Virus record (IMG/VR): IMGVR_UViG_3300032116_000004
Location: 1 to 64,000 of that record
Reading direction: 5' to 3' (one strand)
Length of the DNA: 64,000 nucleotides
Positions 1,091-58,122 of the stretch are shown here, piece by piece. The position numbers and the translations under genes are program-made. The notes below the pieces were generated by a model. It searched no databases and was not told the DNA's origin. It saw nothing but the letters and a program-made list of their open reading frames with translations. How positions within the stretch are numbered: the stretch's first letter is position 1; every line of letters starts with the position of its first letter.

Positions 1091-4000
1091 ATGGCACTAC
1101 TTAGCCCAGGCGTAGAAGTTACGATCATAGATGAATCCAACTATCTACCAGCTCCTACAAATTCAGTACCATTTATCTTGATAGCCACAGCGCAAAACAA
1201 GATCAGTGGTAGCGGTGTTGGCGTGGCTGCCGGCACCACAGAGGTCAACGCAAATCGAGTTTATTTAATCTCTAGCCAAAGAGATTTGGTCAACACATTT
1301 GGTAACCCATTCTTCTACAAAACCACAGCAGGCACACCAATCAATGGTTATGAACTTAACGAATACGGTCTGCTCGCAGCCTATTCTGTTCTAGGCATTT
1401 CCAATCGTGCATACGTCCAGCGTGCCAACATTGACTTGAGCGAACTCACAGCCAGTTTGACACGCCCCACAGGTGCACCCAACAACGGTGACTATTGGTT
1501 AGATACATCGGCCACTGTCTGGGGTATTTCTGAGTGGAGTTTCACTACCAACACATTTACCAACAAGACACCCATAGTGATCACATCAGCAGATGACTTG
1601 ATAGATCCATTGGACACTACCACTGCTCCTTTGGACAGCATCGGTAACATCGGTGACTATGCTGTGGTAGCCGTGAATGCCAACAACTATACCTATTTCA
1701 AATCTCCAGGTAACACTGTCAGTGATCCAGTGGTTGCTGCCAATACCTGGGTGTTAGTGGGGTCAGATGATTGGAAAAACTCATGGCCCTCAGTGATAGG
1801 AACCCAAACCAATCCCACATTGACCAATGCACAAAGCATTTACCTCAATGATCAGTTGGTTACTATCGCTGGAACCACGGTCACTGCCATGGCCTCGGCA
1901 ATCAATGCAGCCAACGTTCCTGGCATCAGTGCCAAGAATGTCAGTGGCAAGTTGGAAATCTACATCGATTCCAACGGATCCAATGATGGATCCACTGATG
2001 ATGGCAACGGTATCCTTGACATAGCCAACGGCACAGGAACTCTGTTGACCGATCTAGGAATCACACCACGCATCTACTATGCACCTGTGCTACAACAGAG
2101 TCCAAACTACACAGTTCCACGCTGGAGGACCACTGACACTGAGCCACATCCAACTGGTTCGGTATGGAACAAGACCAATACAGTAAACCAAGGTGCGGAT
2201 CTCGCAGTGAAGAAATATGATTCCACATTGGGACTGTTTGTGCAACAGAGTTGTCCACTTTATGCCAACGATCAGAGCGCAAACAAGGCTCTAGATCCGG
2301 CTGGTGGTGGTCGCAACATCACAGCAGGTTCGACCTATGCTCAATATGATGTGGACGAAGACTTCACATTCACTATCAAGATCCTTGAGCGTCTGGCCAG
2401 CGGTAACACAATCATCATTGGTGACGACACATCACCAACATTTGTCAACGGCGAACAGTTCACTATCTCCTGGAGCGTGAAAAACAGTGATACACTGACC
2501 ACCGCGGTCACAGCCACGCTGGGCGGAACCACAGCGGCAGATTTTGTCACAGCATTTTTGGCCGCTATACCATCCGGTGCTCCAGTCACAGCAGGCGTGA
2601 CATCAGATGGCGCCATCCAGATACAGCACACCCAAGGTGGTAGCATCGTGCTTGAAGACACATCCGGCACACCCGTGGCAGATGCAGGTATCAATACATC
2701 AGTCACTGGAGTGCGAGCAGGTGTGAGCAATCAGTTGATCCTATCTAACTGGGTAGGTGCACCCACATTCACATACACTGCCAGCGACGTGGCACCTAGC
2801 CAAGATCCTGCTGATGGACGCTTGTGGTATTATTCTGCCACAGATCAAGTTGACATCATGATCAATAGTGGCAATGCCTGGGTTGGATATCGCACACTCA
2901 GCAATGATGTGCGCGGTTACAATTTGACACAGACAGATCCCGCTGGACCAATCATTTCTGTCACAGCACCCACTGTGCAAAGTGACGATACTCCACTGGT
3001 CTATGGTGATCTCTGGATCGACACCAGCGATCTTGAACTGTATCCAGTGATCAAGCGTTGGCAATCAGTAGACGGTGCAGATCAATGGGTATTGATCGAC
3101 AACACCGACCAGACCACCGAAAATGGTGTGCTGTTCGCTGACTTCCGTTGGGCTACCAACGGTGACACAGATCCTATCACTGCTCCAATTCCAACCATAA
3201 CCAGTTTGCTGGCCAGCTCGTATCTGGATCCAGATGCACCTGAGTATACATTGTATCCTGCAGGCATGTTGGCATTCAACCTGCGTCGTTCAGGATTCAA
3301 CGTCAAGAGCTTCCAGGTAGATTACTTCAATGCCACTGACTATCCTGATTTCACAGGCACAGTCACTGATGCATGGGTCACTGCCAGCGGATTGAAAAAC
3401 GATGGATCACCTTACATGGGTCGCAAAGCAGTGCGGAACATGGTGGTGCAGGCCATGAAATCATCGATAGATGGCAATCAAGATCTGCGCGAAGAACAAC
3501 GCCAGTTCAATTTGATCGCCACACCCAACTATCCAGAATTGATAGTGAATATGATAGCACTCAACAATGAGCGCAACAACACAGCGTTTGTAGTTGGTGA
3601 CACACCAATGCGCTTGCCTGACACAGCCGACGCTATCACTGCATGGGCGACCAATGCTGGTGGTGCTGGTTTAGACGGAGAAGATGGACTGGTCACAGCT
3701 GATGCGTATCTTGGCACGTTCTATCCATCATGCCAAACCACAGATTTGACTGGTGGCACAGTGGTGCAACCGCCCAGCCATATGATGTTGCGCACTATCC
3801 TGCGTAGCGACGAAGTTTCGTTCCCATGGTTGGCACCTGCCGGCACACGCCGCGGTGTGGTTGACAATGCGTTTTCGTTGGGATATGTCAATGCCCAGAC
3901 CGGACAGTTTATCTCAACAGCGATCCGTCAAAGCATACGTGATACCTTGTATGAAAACAAGATCAACCCGATCACGTTCATACCTGGCACGGGCATAACC

Positions 4001-4384
4001 AACTACGGTAACAAGACCGAAGCTGCAACACCGTCGGCACTGGATCGTATCAATGTGGCACGTTTGATTGCATTCTTGCGTGGACGCCTTGAAACCATTG
4101 GCAAGAGCTTTGTGTTTGAACCCAATGATCAGATCACTCGTGATGAGATATCCAATGCTATCTCTAACTTGTTGAACGATCTTGTGGCCAAGCGTGGTGT
4201 TTACGACTACCTGGTTGTGTGTGATGAATCAAACAACACACCGGCTCGTATCGATCGCAACGAACTCTATGTTGACATCGCAATCGAGCCTGTGAAAGCA
4301 GTTGAATTCATCTACATACCGGTTCGTATCAAGAACACAGGTGAGATTGCCGCAGGCGATGTTGCTACCGCAAGCACCGTCTAA
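1091..4384 (+). CDS. contractile tail sheath protein (gp18-like) with large inserted domains
   Basis: N-terminal LSPGVEVTIIDES; C-terminal PWLAPAG..RG, LYENKINPI, DRINVARL, FEPND, VCDESNNTP..IDRNEL..DIAIEPVKAVEFIYI. Confidence 0.95.
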   Translation: MALLSPGVEVTIIDESNYLPAPTNSVPFILIATAQNKISGSGVGVAAGTTEVNANRVYLISSQRDLVNTFGNPFFYKTTAGTPINGYELNEYGLLAAYSVLGISNRAYVQRANIDLSELTASLTRPTGAPNNGDYWLDTSATVWGISEWSFTTNTFTNKTPIVITSADDLIDPLDTTTAPLDSIGNIGDYAVVAVNANNYTYFKSPGNTVSDPVVAANTWVLVGSDDWKNSWPSVIGTQTNPTLTNAQSIYLNDQLVTIAGTTVTAMASAINAANVPGISAKNVSGKLEIYIDSNGSNDGSTDDGNGILDIANGTGTLLTDLGITPRIYYAPVLQQSPNYTVPRWRTTDTEPHPTGSVWNKTNTVNQGADLAVKKYDSTLGLFVQQSCPLYANDQSANKALDPAGGGRNITAGSTYAQYDVDEDFTFTIKILERLASGNTIIIGDDTSPTFVNGEQFTISWSVKNSDTLTTAVTATLGGTTAADFVTAFLAAIPSGAPVTAGVTSDGAIQIQHTQGGSIVLEDTSGTPVADAGINTSVTGVRAGVSNQLILSNWVGAPTFTYTASDVAPSQDPADGRLWYYSATDQVDIMINSGNAWVGYRTLSNDVRGYNLTQTDPAGPIISVTAPTVQSDDTPLVYGDLWIDTSDLELYPVIKRWQSVDGADQWVLIDNTDQTTENGVLFADFRWATNGDTDPITAPIPTITSLLASSYLDPDAPEYTLYPAGMLAFNLRRSGFNVKSFQVDYFNATDYPDFTGTVTDAWVTASGLKNDGSPYMGRKAVRNMVVQAMKSSIDGNQDLREEQRQFNLIATPNYPELIVNMIALNNERNNTAFVVGDTPMRLPDTADAITAWATNAGGAGLDGEDGLVTADAYLGTFYPSCQTTDLTGGTVVQPPSHMMLRTILRSDEVSFPWLAPAGTRRGVVDNAFSLGYVNAQTGQFISTAIRQSIRDTLYENKINPITFIPGTGITNYGNKTEAATPSALDRINVARLIAFLRGRLETIGKSFVFEPNDQITRDEISNAISNLLNDLVAKRGVYDYLVVCDESNNTPARIDRNELYVDIAIEPVKAVEFIYIPVRIKNTGEIAAGDVATASTV

Positions 4385-45558: not shown

Positions 45559-46244
45559 ATTATTTTGGCGGCTGTAGCATCACCATGGGTGCAGGTTTCG
45601 AGAGCCAACAAAATGATCCCAGGATCTATCCCAATCTCATTGGCCATGCAGACAACGATGCCGAAGGTGGATCCAGCAATCTAAAAATTTTTACCCGAGC
45701 AGCCAAGGCTTTATTGGATCGTCGACATGATCGATATTTTGTGCAATGGAGTGCTTTGCACAGACACTGGGTTTACCCCAGCGCCAACCAGGGATTTTAT
45801 ATCGGTGCCGACACTGATAGCAATCTAATAGATAAAAAGTTTGTGGCCCAATATCAATTGCTTAATCACGATTATAGTAATATAATGTCATTGATAGACT
45901 ATACCAGGATACTGCAACAGATGTCCGATGATGCTGGAAAAGATATATGGTTTATCAATGGCATGATTCCTTGGACCCAAGACATGTTGACCAATCAATC
46001 TCACAGTGACTATGCCAAGACCTTATATCAAGATCTAGATGATGATCAAACTCGAGATTTCAGTGAACGGTTGCGCAATAATCTTGAATTGATAGACTGG
46101 ACACAATGGGTAAACCCGTGGCACAGCATCGTGGATCTCAAACTGGACCATGCACCGTTGGATGATCATCCGGGCGCTGCCACGCATAGAAAAATCGCTG
46201 ACATGATACAACAACACATAGATACATCGAGAGAAACCCAATGA
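45555..46244 (+). CDS. SGNH/GDSL hydrolase-like protein
   Basis: GGCSITMG, GGSSN, VQWS...R, D.HPG..TH..IA. Confidence 0.65.
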   Translation: MNYFGGCSITMGAGFESQQNDPRIYPNLIGHADNDAEGGSSNLKIFTRAAKALLDRRHDRYFVQWSALHRHWVYPSANQGFYIGADTDSNLIDKKFVAQYQLLNHDYSNIMSLIDYTRILQQMSDDAGKDIWFINGMIPWTQDMLTNQSHSDYAKTLYQDLDDDQTRDFSERLRNNLELIDWTQWVNPWHSIVDLKLDHAPLDDHPGAATHRKIADMIQQHIDTSRETQ

Positions 46245-47638
46245 AAGATTATTCCGTAGAAGTCCAAAAGTTGTTCCTGGAGTTTATGATGCAGGACGCA
46301 CAGAGTTACGTGCGAGTGCAGAACATATTCAATGAAGAAAACTTTGATCGCAGCCTGCGTAGTGCCGCGAAGTTTATCCGAGAACACTGTGATCAACACA
46401 AAACTTTGCCTGATCGCAAACAGGTTCGAGCAGTGACCAATGTTGACCTACAAGAAATACCCGATATCAATGAAGGGCATCTCGACTGGTTCATGGAAGA
46501 GTTTGAATCATTCACTCGTCGACAAGAATTGGAACGTGCGATCCTTAAGTCGGCGGACCTTTTGGAAAAGGGCAATTTTGATCCTGTGGAGAAGTTGATT
46601 AAGGATGCCGTGCAAATATCATTGACCAAGGATCTGGGCACAGATTACTTTGAAGATCCGCGATCGAGACTGCTGGCCTTGAAAAATAATAATGGACAGA
46701 ACTCTACTGGATGGCCTGCCCTGGACAAATTGCTGTATGGTGGATTCAACCGAGGTGAATTGCAGATTTTCGCAGGAGGTTCAGGTTCTGGCAAGAGTTT
46801 GTTCATGCAGAACTTGGCAGTGAACTGGGCACAGGCCGGGCTCAACGGTTGTTACATCACGCTGGAACTGTCAGAAGGTCTTTGTTCCATGCGCATCGAC
46901 TCCATGATGACCAATACGTCTAGCAAAGAAATTTTTCGAGATATCGATACAGTGGAAATGAAAGTCAAGATGATGCAGAAGAAGGCCGGCGCCTTGCAGA
47001 TCAAATACATGCCAGCACAGAGCACAGTGAATGATATCCGTGCATATCTCAAAGAACTGCAAGTGAAGACAAAGAAACGTGTGGATTTTTTATGCGTAGA
47101 TTATCTAGACTTGATCATGCCGGTGAGTGCCAAAGTTAGCCCCAATGATTTATTCGTCAAAGACAAGTATGTTTCAGAAGAACTGCGCAACTTGGCTAAA
47201 GAACTCAATGTATTGTTTGTCACTGCTTCGCAGTTGAATCGTGCGGCAGTGGAAGAGATTGAGTTCGATCATAGCCATATATCGGGTGGTATTTCCAAGA
47301 TCAACACAGCAGATAATGTGTTTGGTATCTTCACAAGTCGAGCCATGCGTGAACGTGGTCGCTATCAGATACAGTTGATGAAGACTCGTTCATCGAGTGG
47401 AGTGGGACAGAAGGTAGATTTAGAGTTTGACATTGAAAGCCTGCGTATCAGAGATTTAGGCGAAGACCAACAGCAAAGTTCTGGATTTGTCAAGAAACCC
47501 AACATCTACGAATCAATCAAGGCCAAGTCTACTATGAAGGATGACAACAGTGAACCAGCTGAAGATGTTGGCAAGGTCACAGCCGATGTGCAATCAAACA
47601 AACTCAAACAGTTATTAGGACAAATCAAACAGTCATGA
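46241..47638 (+). CDS. replicative DNA helicase (DnaB/gp41-like)
   Basis: STGW..LD..LYGG, AGGSGSGKS, ITLELSE, VDYLDL, ASQLNR, KTR. Confidence 0.93.
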   Translation: MKDYSVEVQKLFLEFMMQDAQSYVRVQNIFNEENFDRSLRSAAKFIREHCDQHKTLPDRKQVRAVTNVDLQEIPDINEGHLDWFMEEFESFTRRQELERAILKSADLLEKGNFDPVEKLIKDAVQISLTKDLGTDYFEDPRSRLLALKNNNGQNSTGWPALDKLLYGGFNRGELQIFAGGSGSGKSLFMQNLAVNWAQAGLNGCYITLELSEGLCSMRIDSMMTNTSSKEIFRDIDTVEMKVKMMQKKAGALQIKYMPAQSTVNDIRAYLKELQVKTKKRVDFLCVDYLDLIMPVSAKVSPNDLFVKDKYVSEELRNLAKELNVLFVTASQLNRAAVEEIEFDHSHISGGISKINTADNVFGIFTSRAMRERGRYQIQLMKTRSSSGVGQKVDLEFDIESLRIRDLGEDQQQSSGFVKKPNIYESIKAKSTMKDDNSEPAEDVGKVTADVQSNKLKQLLGQIKQS

Positions 47639-48243
47639 TAGATCAGGATTTGATCGAGAACAACAAGAAACATCTAGCGTCTTGCATCTCCAACAGACTG
47701 TCTACCCCTATAGCAGATTTGTATCAGATAACAGATGTCTTAGATCTTGCGATATTACAAAAACTCAATCAGTATGTTTCATCGGTTTCCAATGACAAAT
47801 GGCAAACAGTGGAAGGTCAAGAAACTCTTCCTAGACAAAAAATCACTTGGGATTTTGATACAGTGATAGAAGAGTTGCATGAAATATTTGATTCTGCGAC
47901 AGATCTGATCAATGAAACGTTTACAGACCCCTATAAACATTTCTGGGGAGTATCGCTCTGGAAAGATGAAGCGGGATATGAAATTGGTTGGCACACTGAT
48001 AATCCTGACATCGATGTTGCCATGCAAATATATCTCTACACTTCATCTGGGGTGGGAACAATCTTTGGATCGGAACACACTCCGATCCTGATACCCAGTG
48101 AGCACAACTCAGGGTATCTAATCCAACATGATAGAACAGACAAAATCTCTCATAGGTCAGAGAGTGTAGTTTCAGCCGGAACTACCCGCTACATCTTATA
48201 CGCTGTGTGGAGTCGCATCTCCAAGCATCTTACCGATACCTAA
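47635..48243 (+). CDS. 2OG-Fe(II) oxygenase superfamily protein
   Basis: LWKD..GY.IGWHTDNPDI, QIYL, GT, NSGY, SH, RY.LY. Confidence 0.75.
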   Translation: MIDQDLIENNKKHLASCISNRLSTPIADLYQITDVLDLAILQKLNQYVSSVSNDKWQTVEGQETLPRQKITWDFDTVIEELHEIFDSATDLINETFTDPYKHFWGVSLWKDEAGYEIGWHTDNPDIDVAMQIYLYTSSGVGTIFGSEHTPILIPSEHNSGYLIQHDRTDKISHRSESVVSAGTTRYILYAVWSRISKHLTDT

Positions 48244-49026
48244 CGATTGTCCTGTTTTATCTTTGGCCACATGTATTATTTTTGTTGGCAAGATATCTAA
48301 AGTCCTACAAATTTCTTGATGTTGACCGCCATAGGAATTCCATAGATAATCTCTTTCAAAATTATCAATCCAATAGCAACCGATAGAAGTGATCACTGTG
48401 TTGGTATCTTTGTAGTAGTCGTTGAATATTGTCACAGAATCCATGGATTTTTGCCTGCTGAATCGTAGTCCTACTCGATTCCATTGTAGGCTCAATTTGC
48501 TGAGACTCACACCAATGCTTTTGATGCAGGGATGATTGAGATCTAGATGGATATCTTTGGCAGTGACAATCCATGCCATATCGATGTGGATATCAATCAT
48601 CCTCTGTTCGCAGATTCTTAGAACATCCTCCCACTCCGGTCTGACATCGCAAAAAGTCCAATGGGGCATGGTGATGATCAATGGCTTGTTGGGCTCAAGG
48701 TCATTGACTTCTACTCCATGTTTGCCCATTAGGGTATAATAAGCATATTCGTTCTTGAGTATCTGAAATCCATTCCATCCATGCTTTTGGACAAAACTTT
48801 CTATATAATGTGTGCATCCCATGGTCACGTCCACATGAGGGAAAGCGTCCCACCCTTGTATATCGTTGATCTTGGTTGATGTGAACCATTCTTTTGCCAT
48901 CGGGAAAAAGTCTTGATAGGTGCTTTGTCTTTGAGCATCGTGATACCATGACTGTCGCAATGATATCATTTTTTGATCTTTCACAGGAAAGAGAGTTTTT
49001 GTTGTTTTAGTTAATTGCCATGTCAT
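48196..49026 (-). CDS. PLP-dependent transferase-like (fold type I) protein
   Basis: G.T..IE, EYAYY, IHIDMAW, SLSK (putative PLP Lys), RVGLR. Confidence 0.55.
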   Translation of the reverse strand: MTWQLTKTTKTLFPVKDQKMISLRQSWYHDAQRQSTYQDFFPMAKEWFTSTKINDIQGWDAFPHVDVTMGCTHYIESFVQKHGWNGFQILKNEYAYYTLMGKHGVEVNDLEPNKPLIITMPHWTFCDVRPEWEDVLRICEQRMIDIHIDMAWIVTAKDIHLDLNHPCIKSIGVSLSKLSLQWNRVGLRFSRQKSMDSVTIFNDYYKDTNTVITSIGCYWIDNFERDYLWNSYGGQHQEICRTLDILPTKIIHVAKDKTGQSLGIGKMLGDATPHSV

Positions 49027-49032
49027 GATGAT

Positions 49033-49503
49033 TTACTCAAATTGTGAGATAATAAATTTATAAAAAGGACTGAAAAATTCAAACTTCCATGTCCCATTGT
49101 GACTTAACCAAGTTTCTCCGATGATTTTTTCTTCCAACGCAACTCCAGCATCTATCTGTTGTTGTTTCCATACTGTGGAATAGATAGGTTCAAACCAACT
49201 GCGGTGCCAGATGAGATTCTGCACATCGATACCATCAATACAAACTTGATTCAAGATAACATATTGATCGAACCGAGATCCATTGTTATCAATCACGCAT
49301 TGATCATCTGTTTTGTTAAATCTCTTTAAAGATACTGTGTGTGGGCGATCAAATTCTAGATCATCCTCAAAGGATAATTTGCATTGCTTTTGATCTAGAG
49401 TTTTTGTGCATTTGATACGATCATCAACGGAAATTTCTATCATGGGAAATTTATCCCAAAATTCTGATCTTATGTCGAATTCAAAACGTATTCGTTCTTT
49501 CAT
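49033..49503 (-). CDS. hypothetical protein
   Basis: 156-aa ORF co-oriented in minus-strand operon. Confidence 0.7.
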   Translation of the reverse strand: MKERIRFEFDIRSEFWDKFPMIEISVDDRIKCTKTLDQKQCKLSFEDDLEFDRPHTVSLKRFNKTDDQCVIDNNGSRFDQYVILNQVCIDGIDVQNLIWHRSWFEPIYSTVWKQQQIDAGVALEEKIIGETWLSHNGTWKFEFFSPFYKFIISQFE

Positions 49504-50556
49504 TTACCACTCCGTTATATAATAGATGCCGCTGTCCCCGCGCTCAGGCCAATAATCCTCCCGGCCCCCTGATCGATGTATATCACTACAAACGCAGTGT
49601 ATTCCGGCATCCCAAAAATATCTAGATTGAAATTCTACCAAATGCGGAGTGATACCTAGAGATTCAAAATATTGAAAAGCCATTTCATCGTAAGCGCCAC
49701 ATATGATATTTTTTTCGTCTACTACCAACATATTGACTTCAAAAACAGTTTCTTGCGGATTGCCTAACCATTGTTCTGCCACGGCCATTATATCTGCGTT
49801 GAAATGCCCGTAGTCTACTCCGGGTAGATACCACTTGTCGGCTATACCAACGTGTTGGAGATTTTTATATGTGGTGTCTGGCAGATGGAACACAGACCAT
49901 CCTGGAAAACTTGAGTCATAGACCTTTCTATAATGAGACGTAAAAATATGCCCTGGCCTAATCGGACAAAAAACTCCGTCGTTATGATCTCCAGTGCCAC
50001 TGAGATGCACTCTATAATCTTTGGCTAATTCCTGTGCTACCAGATACGTGTATTTTTTTGATTCTGGTATATTTGGCTGATAATCTATCAGTATATCTTT
50101 TCCGGCCCGCACCACGCTGGCAAAAATCATCCAGGCCCATGGTTCTGGTGTAGCACGGTCAATGACATGTATTTTTTGTCCTGCTTGGCGATAATCATCT
50201 ACAGCACGTTGATAGGGATTTACTTCGGACGTGTATTGAGGCATGAGATGCAAAGTATCTCCTAGTGTCAGTGCTATGTCGCATGGACTTACCGGTGGTT
50301 TAAGCAAATGATCATGTTCGTCTAAAAAGTCGTCTATACGATCGAATTGAGGCCTGACTACTGTGACACCTAATTTTTCCAATGTGTCTGTTAGATTGTC
50401 AAAATCTTTGTTGGTAATTTCAGTGATTTTTGCAAAAATATCGTGGGATTTGTTGCCAAGATGCTGGTAAAAATCTGCAGGATAAGTGCCACCTACCCAT
50501 ACTTCTTTCAATGGTTGCCATTGGCTGTGACTTGAAACTTTACGTTGACTTATCAT
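49504..50556 (-). CDS. amidinotransferase family protein (glycine/inosamine-phosphate amidinotransferase-like)
   Basis: S...WQPLKEVWVG, GV.VVRP, HNDG, VNMLVVDE, C-terminal WDAGIHC (catalytic Cys); TAAATA 7 nt before ATG. Confidence 0.8.
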   Translation of the reverse strand: MISQRKVSSHSQWQPLKEVWVGGTYPADFYQHLGNKSHDIFAKITEITNKDFDNLTDTLEKLGVTVVRPQFDRIDDFLDEHDHLLKPPVSPCDIALTLGDTLHLMPQYTSEVNPYQRAVDDYRQAGQKIHVIDRATPEPWAWMIFASVVRAGKDILIDYQPNIPESKKYTYLVAQELAKDYRVHLSGTGDHNDGVFCPIRPGHIFTSHYRKVYDSSFPGWSVFHLPDTTYKNLQHVGIADKWYLPGVDYGHFNADIMAVAEQWLGNPQETVFEVNMLVVDEKNIICGAYDEMAFQYFESLGITPHLVEFQSRYFWDAGIHCVCSDIHRSGGREDYWPERGDSGIYYITEW

Positions 50557-50610
50557 ATAAGGATATTTACAGATACGTAAAATCTACTAAATAATTTAAA
50601 GGTTCGGATC

Positions 50611-50856
50611 ATGCACAAAAAGACCCGCAGTATATTAGAAGAACTCGATGCTATGTATATCGAGCGTGATCGCAGGCACGTGATAGAAAATCGTGCTTCA
50701 AACATCATTGCCGGCGCCATCAGGCTCATGGAGCAGATCGATGCCACTTATGATCCAGAGCAGGCAGAAAATCTCCAGCGCAAGCTACTCAACGCCATAC
50801 GCATGCGGGATGCGTCAAAATTCACGAGGACCGTGAGACGCACCGATGAAAGTTAA
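50611..50856 (+). CDS. hypothetical protein
   Basis: TAAATA at 50588; 81-aa helical ORF. Confidence 0.7.
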   Translation: MHKKTRSILEELDAMYIERDRRHVIENRASNIIAGAIRLMEQIDATYDPEQAENLQRKLLNAIRMRDASKFTRTVRRTDES

Positions 50857-51526
50857 ACAGGTCACTAACGAAGGTATTTTCCAAGATTTGGCCACCATTG
50901 GGCGTGCCGAGCAAGATCGCATGGCCCAAAGCCGTTCGGCCATGATGGGCAAGGCCGGAGCCGCGATCAAAGGCGCCATGGGCAAAATACCCGGCGTCAG
51001 TGCCATCCAGCAAACAGCCGCTGCCATCAAACAGGCCGCACAAGATACTACCATCCGGCAACTGGCAGATAAACTGGCCGCCGCATGGGACACAGAAGCC
51101 AAGAAAATAAACGCTGGCAAGACTGCTGGACAGGTCATGGATGCGGATGAATACAAAAAACGAGCGGCTGCCTGGTTAGAGCAAGCCATGCAAGGACAGG
51201 TCGCTGTGGATGAGCGCAACATGGACAAGTATATCACCCAACCAGCCATAGAACAGATGCGTGAATATCTGGCCAAGCATTTTTTGCCCGCCTACAAAGT
51301 CAGCAAAACCGCAGTGGCTCCGGAAATACCTAACGGATACAATGTGATGGTGCGTGGCGGCAGGGCAGGAACTACCGAGATTCCTGACGAAATCTACACC
51401 TGGGCCAATGGTCGTTGGACCAGTGCCAGCGGCCAACAGGTCATCGCCGGCACACCATTGCACAACAGTCTTTCACAGGATGCCGCAGGCAAAATCAAGT
51501 CCACCACAGTTTCGCAGGCCATATGA
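50846..51526 (+). CDS. putative internal head protein
   Basis: MKVKQVTNEG N-terminus; Ala/Gln/Lys-rich. Confidence 0.55.
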   Translation: MKVKQVTNEGIFQDLATIGRAEQDRMAQSRSAMMGKAGAAIKGAMGKIPGVSAIQQTAAAIKQAAQDTTIRQLADKLAAAWDTEAKKINAGKTAGQVMDADEYKKRAAAWLEQAMQGQVAVDERNMDKYITQPAIEQMREYLAKHFLPAYKVSKTAVAPEIPNGYNVMVRGGRAGTTEIPDEIYTWANGRWTSASGQQVIAGTPLHNSLSQDAAGKIKSTTVSQAI

Positions 51527-53400
51527 TGAGATTACTAGAAGGTGGCAACGTATTCAAGGATGATCAAGGACAGGTCATCACGCAACGCATAGCGCAAGCC
51601 GACATCATGCCCACTGTGCAGTGGCTAGAACCCATCACTGGCATTGACTTTACCACAGAAAAAGACTCCATAGATGGACAACCGGCACGCTGGTTGGGTT
51701 CCACCGGTCGCAAGGAATCATCAGGTGATCTGGATCTGCAGATAGATGCCACAAAAATCTCCAAAGAACAATTGATAGATCGACTGCGAGATTGGGCCAA
51801 ACAGCAAGGAGTGGATCCACAACGCTACATCAAGAAGTCCGGAATATCTGTGCATTTCCTCACTGCCATTGGTGGTGACCCACGTCGTGGGTTTGTGCAG
51901 ACCGATTTCATGTTCGCAAATAAACCACGCTGGAATCAGTTCGTGTTGCGTAGCGATCCGGCCAGTGCCTACAAAGGTGCCCTGCGCAACATCATGATCA
52001 ACTCCATGGCCAAATCCATGGGTTTCAAACTCAATCAGAATGATGGTATCGCAAATCGCAACACCAATGACATTGTCACCGACGATCCAGACGCGGTGGC
52101 CAAACTGTTGCTGAATCCCACCGCATCGGCCAAAGACCTCTATTCCGTGGAGAGCATCATGCGTGCTCTCAAAATGGATCCAAACAAAGACAGCAAGATA
52201 GCAGACTTCCGTGCGCACATGGAACGTGAAGGCCAGCCCTTTGATGAAAATTTAGAAGAAGCCGAAGTGCATTTCTTGGCTCGCCTGCGCGACAGGATCG
52301 TGAATCAGGGCATGCAAATCATCGCTGAAGGTGTGCGCATCGAGCATCCCGAAGACATGGTATTTGACATGGGCAGTCGCGGCGCACAACAAGCACTCAC
52401 AGGCATTGTAAATACCGCACAGCAACCAGACACTGCCACTGTGAAATGGGATGGCAAACCCGCTATCATCTTTGGTCGCAAATCCAACGGTGATTTTGTG
52501 CTCACTGACAAGGCCGGTTTCCTGGCCAAGGGCTATGATGGTCTGGCCACTTCGCCTGATATGATCGCCCGCATCATGACTGCCAGAGGCGGCGAGCGTG
52601 GCGAACTCATAGGACTATATCAAAAACTGTTTCCGTTGTTGAGAGCAGCCACACCTCCAGATTTCAGAGGCTATGTTCAAGGAGACTTGCTCTACAGCGC
52701 ACAACCTCAACAAGAGAATGGCAAATGGGTGTTCCAGCCCAACACAGTGAAATATTCAGTGGATGCTGACAGCGATCTTGGTCGCCAGATCGCGGCCAGT
52801 GATGCCGCAGTGGTCGTCCACACACAGTTAGATGCGCCAGGTGCGGCAGCCACTCCCATACGTGCGGCGGCACTGAAGCCGGTTCCGGGCCTGTTGATCT
52901 TGGACCCCAGCCTGCGAGAACCACAGCAAATAAAACTCGACGCCAAGACCGTAAAGAAAACACAGGATCTACTGAAATCCAAAGGTGCGGCCATAGATGC
53001 GCTGTTCAACCCTGCAGAACTGCGTGCCCGCAAGATCACCAACTTACCACAGTTGATGAAACAGTATATCAACACCCGTGTGCGTGCTGGCAGTTATGAT
53101 AACTTGATACAGGGATTTGGTCCCTGGGTGCAGGAACGAGAACCAGCCAAGGCACCGCGCATATTTGAGTGGGCCAATCTCAACAAACAGGGCGTGGCCG
53201 CTGTGTTCCAGACATTCTTGGATCTCAGCGCCTTGAAGAATCAAGTGGTGCGACAGTTAGACAGCCAAGCACATGATGTGCAGGCATCCATCAACGACGA
53301 GCCCGGACACGAAGGTTATGTGGGCCAGGGCATGAAATACGTGGATCGCATGCGTTTCAGCCAAGCCAACTTTGCCCGCAACAATCCTGATCTAGCCTGA
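51523..53400 (+). CDS. fusion protein: Pol-beta-type nucleotidyltransferase-like domain plus KxDG ligase-like domain
   Basis: LGSTG..SSGDLD..VQTDFM in the N-half; EHPED, TVKWDG, QGD, EGYV, KYVDR..FS in the C-half. Confidence 0.6.
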   Translation: MMRLLEGGNVFKDDQGQVITQRIAQADIMPTVQWLEPITGIDFTTEKDSIDGQPARWLGSTGRKESSGDLDLQIDATKISKEQLIDRLRDWAKQQGVDPQRYIKKSGISVHFLTAIGGDPRRGFVQTDFMFANKPRWNQFVLRSDPASAYKGALRNIMINSMAKSMGFKLNQNDGIANRNTNDIVTDDPDAVAKLLLNPTASAKDLYSVESIMRALKMDPNKDSKIADFRAHMEREGQPFDENLEEAEVHFLARLRDRIVNQGMQIIAEGVRIEHPEDMVFDMGSRGAQQALTGIVNTAQQPDTATVKWDGKPAIIFGRKSNGDFVLTDKAGFLAKGYDGLATSPDMIARIMTARGGERGELIGLYQKLFPLLRAATPPDFRGYVQGDLLYSAQPQQENGKWVFQPNTVKYSVDADSDLGRQIAASDAAVVVHTQLDAPGAAATPIRAAALKPVPGLLILDPSLREPQQIKLDAKTVKKTQDLLKSKGAAIDALFNPAELRARKITNLPQLMKQYINTRVRAGSYDNLIQGFGPWVQEREPAKAPRIFEWANLNKQGVAAVFQTFLDLSALKNQVVRQLDSQAHDVQASINDEPGHEGYVGQGMKYVDRMRFSQANFARNNPDLA

Positions 53401-54166: not shown

Positions 54167-54584
54167 ATGCTATACCTTGTTTGATATCACTGCTACTGGG
54201 ATAAATGGGCACGTCAAAGCCGCACAGTTTCCTTATGTGAGTCGCAACGGACTGACCATGGCAGACCCAGCGTCCTTGGCACGAGCACGCAATCAACAAA
54301 GGAATTTTGACACCTTATTGCAGTTGATCGGACTGCGCACCCAAATGTTCAATGTCAGCGATCCCACTGTGCAGGACACAGGGCCCTTTGGCAATCAACG
54401 AACCTGGCACTTTGATTTTGAGATAGAACCGCAGGCGCAATGGTTGGTGGATGGTGATGAATTTTGGGTGCTTAAACAGGACAGTGACAGCACACCCATG
54501 ATCATTGATCTAGAAGAAACATCTGATCTCGAACCCAGGATCATAACATTAGGGGACAGCCCCAACACCATATATCATGCCTAA
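54153..54584 (+). CDS. hypothetical protein
   Basis: TLFDIT.TG, RNQQRNF.TL.Q.I.LR, W.F.FE. Confidence 0.7.
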   Translation: MQKIECYTLFDITATGINGHVKAAQFPYVSRNGLTMADPASLARARNQQRNFDTLLQLIGLRTQMFNVSDPTVQDTGPFGNQRTWHFDFEIEPQAQWLVDGDEFWVLKQDSDSTPMIIDLEETSDLEPRIITLGDSPNTIYHA

Positions 54585-54616
54585 ATCTATAAATAAATCC
54601 ATAACGAAGGAAGATC

Positions 54617-54880
54617 ATGGTCACGACCACGGACATCGAAAAGAAAAGCCTAGAAACTCACGTGGAACTGTGCGCGGAGAGATACAAGTTTCTGGAAGAA
54701 AAACTGGAAAACGTGGAGCAAAAGGTAACACAGACCGAAACCGTGATCAGAGAGATTCACGACATGATGCAAAGAATGGCCGACAAGCGCACGGATCAGA
54801 TCATATCGTGGGGCATAGGAATAATCGGGTTCCTGCTGGCCAGCCTGGGCTGGATGATAACCACATACGTGATCAAATAA
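54617..54880 (+). CDS. coiled-coil protein with C-terminal transmembrane helix (possible lysis/membrane protein)
   Basis: HVELCAERY, coiled coil, then WGIGIIGFLLASLGWMI; TATAAATA at 54588 and AAGGAAG RBS. Confidence 0.65.
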   Translation: MVTTTDIEKKSLETHVELCAERYKFLEEKLENVEQKVTQTETVIREIHDMMQRMADKRTDQIISWGIGIIGFLLASLGWMITTYVIK

Positions 54881-54891
54881 TCATAGACCGC

Positions 54892-55383
54892 GTGGAATCC
54901 ACGCTGGATCGCATAGCAAGACAGGTATTTGCCAATCCCAACTCAATACTGCCAGTCAACGATGGGTATCAAGCATTTGGACGCTATACTATCGTCAAAC
55001 AGGCCCAGTATTTTGAAGTGTATCGTGGAGCCACATTGGCCGCATGCCCCAGTTCTGCACGCCTGGCCCTGGCATGGTGCATAGCCGACAAACTGGGCAA
55101 ATTCACCCTCACACAAGAGATCATGCTGTTTGATCAAGAAATAGAACGCCGCAGAGATGAGATCAGATATTTCCGGCACATGATAGAAACCACCACAGAC
55201 ACTGAGCGTAAATATGTGCTGGAAGACAGATTGCAACACAGCCACACACGCTTGAAGTGGTTGCAAGAACACTTGGACAAATGCGTAAATCTGGCTAAAT
55301 ACTGGCAACAAAAAGGATTCAAAGATGAAACTGCAAGAATTGGACTCAAAAACCAAAACACAACAAACACGCAAAGTGCTTGA
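54892..55383 (+). CDS. hypothetical protein (start uncertain)
   Basis: C-terminal part of the 54577 ORF looks protein-like (ALAWCIADK, coiled coil). Confidence 0.55.
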   Translation: MESTLDRIARQVFANPNSILPVNDGYQAFGRYTIVKQAQYFEVYRGATLAACPSSARLALAWCIADKLGKFTLTQEIMLFDQEIERRRDEIRYFRHMIETTTDTERKYVLEDRLQHSHTRLKWLQEHLDKCVNLAKYWQQKGFKDETARIGLKNQNTTNTQSA

Positions 55384-57093: not shown

Positions 57094-57406
57094 TGAAGCG
57101 GCCTGCCGCGTTAAGGAAAACATCGCCCGACGTGGACGCGGCCTAGGCATCAAGATTGGTGTGCGCACCACAGGCTGTTCGGGTCTGGCCTATACCCTGG
57201 AATACGTGGATACGGATCAAGGGCGAGAGCACTGCGTGGCACACTATGACATCAACGGTGTGCGCATATATGTGGATCCCAAGCATCGTCCTTATCTCGA
57301 AGGCATGACCATGGCATGGGTCAAAAACGGCCTCAACGAAGGATTTGATTTCATCAACCCTAACGAACGCGACCGCTGTGGTTGCGGAGAAAGTTTCCGA
57401 GTCTAA
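57077..57406 (+). CDS. iscA: Fe-S cluster carrier IscA
   Basis: TGCSGLAY, F.F.NPN....CGCGESF. Confidence 0.95.
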   Translation: MITVTDEAACRVKENIARRGRGLGIKIGVRTTGCSGLAYTLEYVDTDQGREHCVAHYDINGVRIYVDPKHRPYLEGMTMAWVKNGLNEGFDFINPNERDRCGCGESFRV

Positions 57407-57408
57407 TA

Positions 57409-58122
57409 TTGTATATTCAAAAATTTAACTACGAGCCCTTGAATCGCACCAGCGAAGATGGGCGACGACTGTATCTCACTCCCGATGGTAAAAAGTTACC
57501 ATCAGTTACTACCATACTTGACCGTACCAAGCCCGAAGAAAAGAAACAGGCTTTGGCCAATTGGAAAAAGCGTGTGGGTGAGGCCCAAGCACAGCAAATT
57601 ACCACGGAGGCCGCCAATCGCGGAACCCGTATGCATACATATCTTGAGCACTATGTCAAGACCGGTGAAATAAAACCAGCGGGCACTAATCCCTATGCCT
57701 GGAGCAGTCATGCCATGGCCATGACAGTGATTGAACAAGGACTTAAAAATGTTGAAGAATTTTGGGGTGTGGAAATACCGCTTTACTTTCCCAATCTCTA
57801 TGCAGGAACTTCGGACGGTGCTGGAATCCATCTTGGCAGCCAAAGCATCCTAGATTACAAACAAACCAACAAACCCAAGCGCCGGGAGTGGATCGAAGAT
57901 TACTTCCTGCAACTGGTGGCCTATGCCCTGGCCCACAACGAAGTGCATGGCACCCGCATACGCAAGGGCGTGGTGCTGATGTGTGTAAAACCTGAAATAG
58001 ACACACAGTTTACTATCACAAAACCCCCAGAATATCAGGAATTCGTGCTGGAAGAGGCGGATTTTGATTATTGGGAACAGCAGTGGTGGCGGCGCCTGGA
58101 GCTCTATTACTTGACCGCATAA
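57409..58122 (+). CDS. PD-(D/E)XK exonuclease
   Basis: LPSVTTIL, W..RVG, RGT.MH..LE, AGTSD, ILDYKQ, YFLQL.AYA; TTG start assumed. Confidence 0.85.
   Translation: MYIQKFNYEPLNRTSEDGRRLYLTPDGKKLPSVTTILDRTKPEEKKQALANWKKRVGEAQAQQITTEAANRGTRMHTYLEHYVKTGEIKPAGTNPYAWSSHAMAMTVIEQGLKNVEEFWGVEIPLYFPNLYAGTSDGAGIHLGSQSILDYKQTNKPKRREWIEDYFLQLVAYALAHNEVHGTRIRKGVVLMCVKPEIDTQFTITKPPEYQEFVLEEADFDYWEQQWWRRLELYYLTA

Follow-up and report, generated by a model that had tools for sequence, protein, structure and literature searches.

A gene of a freshwater jumbo phage (a myovirus) encodes a fusion of two enzyme halves, a family-X DNA polymerase (PolX)-like domain and a ligase-type nucleotidyltransferase, and the best overall explanation of the evidence, to which we assign a probability of roughly 0.5, is that the protein is packaged, cut by the prohead protease, and repairs nucleic-acid ends. 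The stretch of DNA analysed, referred to here as the window, comprises the first 64 kb of the 315,778-bp IMG/VR viral record IMGVR_UViG_3300032116_000004, whose completeness was estimated at 91%. The fusion gene is a single, uninterrupted open reading frame (ORF) of 625 amino acids at 51523-53400, on the plus strand, as are all features of the gene and of its apparent operon located below. Its true start is probably the ATG at 51526, which gives MRLLE, because the protein starts one residue downstream in 101 of 120 close homologues. Judged from the predicted structures, both folds are very probably assigned correctly, and there is a good chance that both enzymes are catalytically active; packaging in the virion with cleavage falls a little short of even odds.

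An initial annotation of the gene had quoted a series of motifs in support of a Pol-beta/PolX-type first half and a ligase-like second half, and every one of them is present in the proposed order, from LGSTG through KYVDR, on invariant or near-invariant columns of the family. Because these columns belong to a family of more than 1400 clusters, the quoted motifs are not chance resemblances. In the N-terminal half (N-half), LGSTG occupies residues 58-62, SSGDLD residues 66-71, and VQTDF residues 125-129. By alignment, the stretch LGSTGRKESSGDLD (51694-51735) holds the G-S nucleotide-binding loop and the catalytic residues D69 and D71, and VQTDF (51895-51909) provides the third catalytic carboxylate, D128. 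Across 40 diverse homologues, G59, D71 and several other positions are invariant, and S/T60, G68, D69, H111, Q126 and D128 are nearly so; these residues match the G-[ST]...DxD...D pattern of Pol-beta-type nucleotidyltransferases.

The N-half was modelled with AlphaFold2 from the 40-homologue alignment, giving a predicted local distance difference test score (pLDDT) of 92.9, and the model was compared with known structures by Foldseek and, independently, by VIA-align, which searched 48,161 PDB chains. The top 50 Foldseek matches in the PDB were all family-X DNA polymerases (Pol lambda, E 1.7e-4 over about 200 columns), and the Swiss-Prot models agreed, with B. subtilis PolX and Pol beta among them, the latter over residues 148-332. 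The ten best VIA-align chains were also all of family X. Pol beta aligned with Z 10.7 over 162 residues (model residues 13-210 against Pol beta 140-335), Pol X of African swine fever virus (ASFV) aligned with Z 9.2 over 159 of 176 residues, and further matches included Pol lambda, TdT, Thermus PolX, Pol mu and Deinococcus PolX. Terminal uridylyltransferases (TUTases), CD-NTases and CCA-adding enzymes reached a Z of at most 6.8 over about 85 residues, which correspond to the palm only. Since family-X chains align over palm and thumb, and other nucleotidyltransferases over the palm only, the domain (residues 7-236; 51541-52230) is, on the predicted model, a minimal PolX made up of palm and thumb, like ASFV Pol X, a more exact description than the one first proposed. 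Language-model neighbours of the N-half carry NTP_transf_2, DNA_pol_B_palm and DNA_pol_B_thumb. Neither an 8-kDa dRP-lyase domain nor helix-hairpin-helix fingers were found in this half, which is about 230 residues long and whose alignments begin at the Pol beta palm; their absence excludes a canonical Pol beta and leaves the minimal PolX, since ASFV Pol X lacks the same parts. The N-half had no match in Pfam, and no match in the PDB with either sequence or profile.

The C-terminal half (C-half; residues 270-625, 52330-53397) bears the only Pfam name on the fusion, DUF6267 (PF19782), which matches residues 273-618 with 137.1 bits against a gathering cut-off of 27 (E 1.3e-39). A Pfam match to EAL (E 0.0096, under the cut-off) was discarded as spurious. 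Residue numbers in this half equal the alignment numbering plus 255, and on that scale IEHPED lies at 273-278, TVKWDG at 306-311, QGD at 386-388, EGYV at 597-600 and KYVDR at 605-609. The alignment places a family-specific element, RIEHPED (H275, E277 and D278; 52336-52356), about 30 residues before motif I, TVKWDG (52438-52455), in which K, D and G are invariant and K308 is the predicted AMP acceptor. The motif III-like strand YVQGDLLY, with its invariant D388, is found at 52672-52695 by alignment and model, and motifs IV (EGYV) and V (KYVDR), with invariant E597, G598, K605 and R609, at 53311-53349. The candidate ligase motifs are collinear and located on strands (I KWDG, Ia TDKxG, III GDLLY, IIIa PNTVxY, IV EGYV, V KxVDR). 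In 47 diverse homologues, the invariant positions of the C-half are H275, D278, K308, D310, G311, G318, D388, P406, Y411, G420, H433, K572, E597, G598, K605, R609 and F612. The secondary structure of the model includes an all-helical insert of 107 residues (474-580; 52942-53262) between motifs IIIa and IV.

The AlphaFold2 model of the C-half has a pLDDT of 94.0, and in the VIA-align search the first 21 of the 48,161 chains were all RNA or DNA ligases (Z 7.2-4.9, 154-193 residues), with alignments that span model residues 15-360. The best matches were Naegleria NgrRnl (Z 7.2), T. brucei TbREL1 (6.4) and T4 Rnl2 (6.3), followed by fungal Trl1, T4 Rnl1, archaeal and human DNA ligases, and the T4 and T7 DNA ligases. 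Among the Atlas language-model neighbours of this half, PF09414 RNA_ligase was the family in 82 of 100 named hits. The model has no OB (oligonucleotide/oligosaccharide-binding) or appended accessory domain, and the chain stops about 20 residues past motif V. Because the VIA-align list is made up entirely of ligases, the motif pattern fits, and the Atlas neighbours agree, membership of the modelled C-half in the covalent nucleotidyltransferase (ligase) superfamily is in our judgement secure, and the likeness to ligases first read from the motifs holds.

Polymerase-like and ligase-like modules recur together in viral proteins. A word-indexed search found more than 4000 clusters at 90% identity that match the fusion protein; the best 120 of these matches are 65-97% identical to it and full length (615-641 residues), apart from one fragment of 486 residues. 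An exhaustive search gave 1405 viral clusters at 50% identity, and 468 phage records carry DUF6267. At a coverage of 80% or more, the phage collection contained no cultured phage with the fused gene. The halves also occur separately, as N-halves of about 250 residues and C-halves of about 370-400, and fusions are known in both orders, with the C-half leading in P0137, P0147 and P0148. Longer homologues add further domains: cytidylyltransferase-like in P0139, DUF2608/HAD in P0143, where it lies upstream of the PolX-DUF6267 unit, and DUF5661 with NT5C/HAD in P0155. In the cultured phages Atu_ph07, Phosso and PA5oct, the PolX-like gene adjoins a different RNA-ligase-like gene. This neighbour matches PF09414 weakly in Atu_ph07 (AUZ94878, E 0.002) and in Phosso (gp446, with KLDG at motif I), and the N-terminus of PA5oct EST35_0228 is homologous to Phosso gp446; an hhalign comparison of the C-half profile with the Phosso neighbour was not significant, and motif I alone lined up. 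The polymerase-like and ligase-like modules are functionally coupled, and the repertoire formed when HAD domains join them is one of end healing, gap filling and sealing. A literature search on "DUF6267" found no paper, and one on PolX or ligase as phage virion cargo found nothing relevant.

DUF6267 is also found in cyanomyoviruses, namely Syn9 (gp183, L005:3944-4906), P-RSM6 (L001:6067-7245) and S-SCSM2R (L011:3001-3981), where its genes lie just downstream of those for gp41 helicase and MazG. Neither a PF01068 nor a PF01653 ligase was found in these three genomes, and it was remarked in 2010 that cyanomyoviruses lack a gp30 homologue (PMC2984593); DUF6267 is a candidate for their missing gp30-type ligase. 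Cytidylyltransferase/NMNAT-like genes adjoin DUF6267 in Syn9 (gp184, L005:4908-6056), in P-RSM6 (CPXG_00042, L001:7246-8343) and at L016:7049-10255. Their products have T4-like leaders of 10 residues, MKKFSAFLSE-A and MITFHVFITE-A, and a metagenomic relative begins MRLDELEE-A; from these leaders, such neighbours may be capsid-targeted too.

Two candidate prohead-protease sites flank the polymerase half of the fusion. The first, found by homologue comparison, ends the short leader M(M)RLLE (51523-51540) as L-L-E6 followed by G7. An [LI]xE motif stands directly before the GG of the polymerase domain in 61 of 65 homologues, including all 16 internal copies. The 120 close homologues without exception have E at P1, with L (67) or I (53) at P3 and any of N, L, T, S or A at the variable P2. 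E6, G7, G8, N9, F11 and K12 are conserved positions of the N-domain alignment. Leaderless relatives, which begin M-GG or M-SG, occur in Atu_ph07, Phosso, PA5oct, P0122 and P0131, and their existence indicates that the leader is not needed for the fold of the N-half. LLE-GG was at first read as a mere part of the fold, and this was revised given the leaderless relatives and the free P2. We infer that the leadered and leaderless forms would reach the same Gly/Ser N-terminus, the former by cleavage and the latter by methionine removal.

The second candidate site, I-A-E269 followed by G270, lies in the linker between the halves (52231-52332), which was delimited from the models and homologues; its pLDDT ranges from below 50 to about 70 in both half models, and it is predicted to be unstructured. 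ENLEE is found at 242 and IIAEG at 266. An [LI]xE occurs at most 12 residues upstream of RIxHxED in 89 of 114 homologues, compared with 8.9% of random 12-residue windows from the same proteins; its distance to the ligase domain varies (2-6 residues), and P1' is A, G or S in 73 of the 89. In the 120 close homologues, P3 is I (117) or L (3), P2 is variable, P1 is E without exception, and P1' is G in 116. Just upstream of this site lies an almost invariant helix, FLARLRDRIVNQGM (residues 251-264; 52273-52314), which is found on the C-terminal end of the polymerase-like protein or the N-terminal end of the ligase-like protein in split relatives, and which could be a targeting, tethering or partner-binding element. 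Many stand-alone DUF6267 proteins carry leaders such as MRAQEFLTE, MRSSEFITE, MKIIELLTE and MRLTELLVE, and some stand-alone N-domains begin with a longer leader resembling a capsid-targeting sequence (CTS), MRFTEF...LLE-GG.

A T4 gp21-type prohead protease is encoded in the same genome (G000 312482-313105, with the PF03420 match at 312548-312967, E 4.8e-28), in one block with portal, scaffold and gp23-like capsid genes. At least nine genes at 161,989-172,194 of this genome (L007:1989-12194), outside the window, encode leaders of the MR(A/S)QEF(I/L/V)xE-like type, among them MRSQEFISE, MRAQELLVE, MRVAEFIAE, MRAREFVTE and MKASEFVSE, and from these leaders the cluster looks like an internal-protein locus. 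T4 IPIII and IPII begin with the closely similar MKTYQEFIAE, the experimentally defined capsid-targeting sequence of T4 (PMC9026906). The initial annotation had placed the fusion among proteins with similar N-termini; in the window this is borne out in part (55325, MKLQEL...VLE-S; 50611, ILE-E), and strongly elsewhere in the genome. One CTS-like protein of this genome, 614 residues long (L007:2965-4809; MRAQEFANSK...DIDDTL), contains a phosphatase domain of the DUF2608/HAD type and also matches GNAT weakly. In a 132-residue protein (L007:2570-2968), the CTS-like leader MRAQELLVE is followed directly by a twin-arginine (TAT) export signal, which suggests that this protein may be ejected and then exported to the periplasm.

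Evidence on location also comes from phage PA5oct, in which 93 virion-associated proteins were detected by mass spectrometry (PMC7318152). PA5oct EST35_0231 is a homologue of the N-half (E 2e-8) that shares LGSTG..GDIDL and QVDFM, and it is annotated as "structural protein, ESI-MS/MS" (electrospray ionization tandem mass spectrometry). Neighbouring PA5oct genes homologous to window genes 50611, 54153 and 55325 bear the same annotation, and the positional equivalent of the 81-residue gene at 50611, EST35_0230, is annotated as a virion protein by mass spectrometry. With regard to expression, a candidate T4-type late promoter core, TAAATA, is located at 50588-50593, 23 nt before the 50611 gene. 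TAAATA is ten times as dense in the 80 nt upstream of genes as genome-wide (1.91 vs 0.19 per kb), it also precedes the tail sheath gene and other virion genes, and the genome encodes a weak gp55 homologue. The genome has 88 copies on the plus strand and 33 on the minus strand, with no clear preference in the flanking bases; examples in the window are at 1057, 4445, 12310, 16532, 50588, 53427, 53913, 55296, 56667 and 58120.

Taken together, these observations can be arranged into a tentative mechanism. The fusion would be expressed from an operon headed by the T4-late-type TAAATA and enter the prohead, where the T4-type protease would cut after L-L-E6 and I-A-E269 and free two enzymes. These would be ejected with the genome and would fill and seal breaks before phage gene expression starts, acting on interruptions in the incoming DNA or on nucleic acid damaged by the host. 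In such a system, the N-half (residues 7-236; D69, D71 and D128) would extend the 3'-OH of a gap or break by one or a few nucleotides. The C-half (270-625) would accept AMP on K308, pass it on to a 5'-phosphate and then close the nick, with the helical insert in its catalytic domain serving as a nucleic-acid clamp. The CTS-bearing HAD phosphatase possibly assists repair and, judged from its sequence, may be the end-healing partner of polymerase and ligase. That the task is DNA gap filling and sealing is a tentative assignment, somewhat less probable than the general scheme.

The results that weigh against a packaged repair protein concern both its location and its ligase half. As to location, a full capsid-targeting sequence of the MKTYQEFIAE type was not found on the fusion, whose leader has 5-6 residues and no EF(I/L)xE core, and the leader [LI]xE abuts GG with no variable spacing, so that it could be an integral element of the N-terminal domain. 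The PA5oct virion homologue EST35_0231 has no leader, and seven of the proteins detected in PA5oct are, according to the authors of that study, enzymes with no relation to the virion (PMC7318152). The DUF6267 proteins of cultured cyanomyoviruses are leaderless as well, starting M(A/K)KNTHLEHPED, and DUF6267 is not named in the virion proteome of S-SCSM2R (23 proteins). The TAAATA that the initial annotation noted upstream does exist, but it heads the apparent operon 935 nt from the fusion ORF and is overlapped by a sigma-70-like match. Finally, the fusion is conserved far above the level of T4 internal proteins, and its gene surroundings are those of replication and nucleotide metabolism. Several of these points favour a reading in which the same two enzymes stay unpackaged, as a one-chain cytoplasmic enzyme of replication, recombination or base-excision repair, with [LI]xE as a structural or docking element that abuts the polymerase domain directly. 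The gene lies between a DnaB-like helicase gene and those for an exonuclease and NrdAB, a synteny kept in a relative, the leaderless cyanomyovirus genes follow gp41 helicase and MazG in genomes without a known ligase, and 65-97% identity across 120 metagenomic homologues resembles a core enzyme, unlike the hypervariable internal proteins of T4. We nevertheless consider an unpackaged enzyme doubtful, since a canonical ATP-dependent DNA ligase is already encoded elsewhere in the genome, the leader keeps P3 and P1 with a free P2 although the fold does not need it, and the second site is set in a linker predicted to lack structure, at a distance from the domain that varies. In addition, stand-alone DUF6267 proteins of other phages have full CTS-like leaders (e.g., MRAQEFLTE), and PA5oct mass spectrometry favours a location in the virion. 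A head-packaged precursor cut at LLE and IAE, as initially proposed, is strengthened as a candidate by the conserved sites, by the protease and CTS cluster in the genome, by the precedent of T4 Alt and by the PA5oct annotation.

As to the ligase half, the structural scores are modest (Z 5-7.2), also by VIA-align's own caveats. The per-domain Foldseek check that had been suggested gave family X for the N-half and nothing significant for the C-half, with a best E of 0.36 against the PDB, and the ligase assignment therefore rests on VIA-align, the motifs and the Atlas neighbours; in the non-significant top list, RNA ligases, DNA ligases and capping enzymes were already over-represented. An hhalign comparison of the C-half profile with T4 Rnl2 was not significant, and PDB sequence searches with the whole protein and with profiles of both halves returned nothing meaningful, which makes DUF6267 a separate family at the sequence level. 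Because the best structural matches are RNA ligases, the substrate of the C-half may be RNA or a hybrid. This bears on a second alternative, in which the protein repairs or modifies RNA, the ligase sealing, for example, tRNA cut by an anticodon nuclease and the PolX-like half rebuilding or tailing the 3' ends of RNA, on the model of T4 Rnl1/Pnkp or of the trypanosome pair of TUTase and REL1. The nearest structures and language-model neighbours of the C-half are indeed RNA ligases (NgrRnl, TbREL1, T4 Rnl2, Trl1, PF09414), this half has no OB domain, the HAD phosphatase fusions are reminiscent of the Pnkp phosphatase, and the ligase-like neighbours in Atu_ph07 and Phosso match PF09414 weakly. 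However, the fit of the N-half to family-X DNA polymerases covers both palm and thumb (Z 7.5-10.7), and its fit to TUTases and CCA-adding enzymes the palm only (at most 6.8), no kinase domain was seen among the fusions examined, and enzymes of the Rnl2/Rnl5 type seal duplex nicks, not tRNA loops; we regard RNA repair as improbable. Still less credible, in our judgement, is an action on nucleotides or proteins, such as nucleotide/NAD metabolism or nucleotidylation of a host target, in which the ligase fold would serve for self-nucleotidylation or transfer only. It would account for the recurrent partners of the HIGH-motif cytidylyltransferase/NMNAT-like and NT5C nucleotidase types, which are found as fused domains in P0139 and P0155 and as neighbours in Syn9, P-RSM6 and L016, but the thumb of PolX is retained, a motif Ia-like T-D-K-x-G follows motif I, and to our knowledge all known covalent nucleotidyltransferases with KxDG are polynucleotide ligases or capping enzymes. 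The ideas of countering an anticodon nuclease and of nucleotide tagging, both raised in the initial annotation, gained no specific support.

The packaged repair protein that we favour resembles several known systems in part. ASFV Pol X and its ligase form a virion-carried viral system for gap-filling and sealing repair. As in the fusion, a minimal palm-plus-thumb PolX (O174L) is paired with a ligase (NP419L), and the ASFV ligase is among the structural matches of the C-half. In contrast to the ASFV enzymes, those of the phage form one polypeptide, the phage ligase lacks both an OB domain and an N-terminal domain for DNA binding and is nearer to RNA ligases, and there is no similarity at the sequence level. 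In Nucleocytoviricota, Atlas clusters join PF01068 or PF03120 with DNA_pol_lambd_f, palm and thumb, so that a family-X polymerase and a ligase share one viral chain, as in the phage protein; these fusions have a canonical ATP- or NAD-dependent ligase with OB and a full PolX with fingers, whereas the phage protein combines DUF6267 with a truncated PolX, and the two kinds of fusion are evidently independent. Bacterial LigD, an enzyme of non-homologous end joining (NHEJ), unites ligase, gap-filling polymerase and phosphoesterase in one chain for break repair. The phage fusion would likewise combine ligase and gap-filling polymerase activities in one chain, but the polymerase of LigD has the archaeo-eukaryotic primase fold and its ligase is canonical with OB, whereas the phage half is a PolX; no Ku partner was seen for the phage fusion.

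Enzymes of the Rnl2/Rnl5 type (T4 Rnl2, REL1, NgrRnl) are the best structural matches of the C-half (Z 6.3-7.2, 170-183 residues), and like DUF6267 they have the KxDG, EG and K motifs and no OB domain. DUF6267 differs from them in having no significant sequence or profile similarity, in an extra invariant RIxHPED, and in its helical module, which is inserted between motifs IIIa and IV where theirs is appended. With respect to delivery, the closest parallels are T4 Alt and IPI-III, which share with the fusion a short propeptide ending in [LI]-x-E, with a T4-type prohead protease in both genomes; Alt is an enzyme and not a structural protein, as the fusion is predicted to be. The Alt sequence begins MELITE; cleavage of this ejected enzyme at ITE-6 takes off exactly six residues, and a cut at LTE-619 removes a C-terminal propeptide (PMC5694885). 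Unlike these T4 proteins, the fusion has no full CTS on its leader, and its packaging and cleavage are putative. A cut at its internal site would separate two enzymes made as one precursor, an arrangement not known among the ejected proteins of T4; the second cut of Alt is the one that removes the C-terminal propeptide. By sequence comparison, then, the fusion is not a member of the ASFV, giant-virus, LigD, Rnl2/Rnl5 or Alt families.

The tail sheath gene (1091-4384) indicates a distant kinship of the phage with Atu_ph07, PA5oct and Phosso, and DNA almost identical to its own recurs in lake and freshwater metagenomes of several studies. Public sequencing runs place the phage in many lake metagenomes; the single RNA run among them contained 5% of its sequence words. 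The apparent operon begins with a conserved gene for an 81-residue partner protein (50611-50856), assigned to phrog_11854, "virion structural protein", whose product shares 46% identity with Phosso gp444. In a 69%-identical relative (L014), a homologue of this gene lies directly 5' of the fusion gene. Between the two genes of the window lies an ORF of 226 residues (50846-51526), whose stop shares ATGA with the start ATG of the fusion ORF; family searches gave no match for it, and as it is missing from L014, it does not count among the conserved components. The fusion gene is located between a DnaB-like helicase gene (46241-47638) and an exonuclease gene (57382-58122), which NrdA and NrdB follow, and in L014 the helicase gene is likewise followed by an 85-residue gene and the fusion gene, with those for exonuclease and NrdA farther along. 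A canonical ATP-dependent DNA ligase (PF01068) is encoded at about 67-68.5 kb, just beyond the window, so the DUF6267 ligase is additional, with a separate job, and the fusion was rejected as the replicative ligase of this phage.

Elsewhere in the region, three minus-strand genes (48196-49026, 49033-49503 and 49504-50556) break up an otherwise plus-strand stretch. The G+C content at this trio (48001-50556) is the lowest of the window, 0.40 compared with about 0.48, and L014 has a radical-SAM gene in its place; the trio is possibly an inserted cassette. Two plus-strand ORFs, of 268 residues (54577-55383) and 87 residues (54617-54880, MVTTTDIEKK...), overlap in different frames. The shorter has a homologue in L014 and PHROG matches, and the longer is probably not a gene.

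The ligase assignment gives the abundant viral DUF6267 family, a core gene of marine cyanomyoviruses, a testable function, and it bears on the reported lack of a DNA ligase in these viruses, a question that goes back to at least 2010 (PMC2984593). A PolX fused to a ligase in tailed phages extends the repair strategy of ASFV and giant viruses to bacteriophages. We also consider, as a rather speculative proposal, that DUF6267, common across T4-like and jumbo phages, is a new and structurally distinct family of polynucleotide ligases with two roles: in many uncultured phages, this one among them, as a capsid-targeted precursor, alone or fused to a minimal PolX, that is cut by the prohead protease and becomes ejected cargo, and in marine cyanomyoviruses, in its leaderless form, as a substitute for the gp30 DNA ligase; if so, this would be the first DNA-repair cargo described for a phage head. 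Should the [LI]xE sites be real, phage heads would deliver nucleic-acid repair enzymes besides anti-restriction and host-takeover cargo, and the capsid-targeting logic of T4 would be conserved far beyond the T-even phages. If true, this would help to explain what happens in the first minutes of infection and be of use in the engineering of protein delivery.

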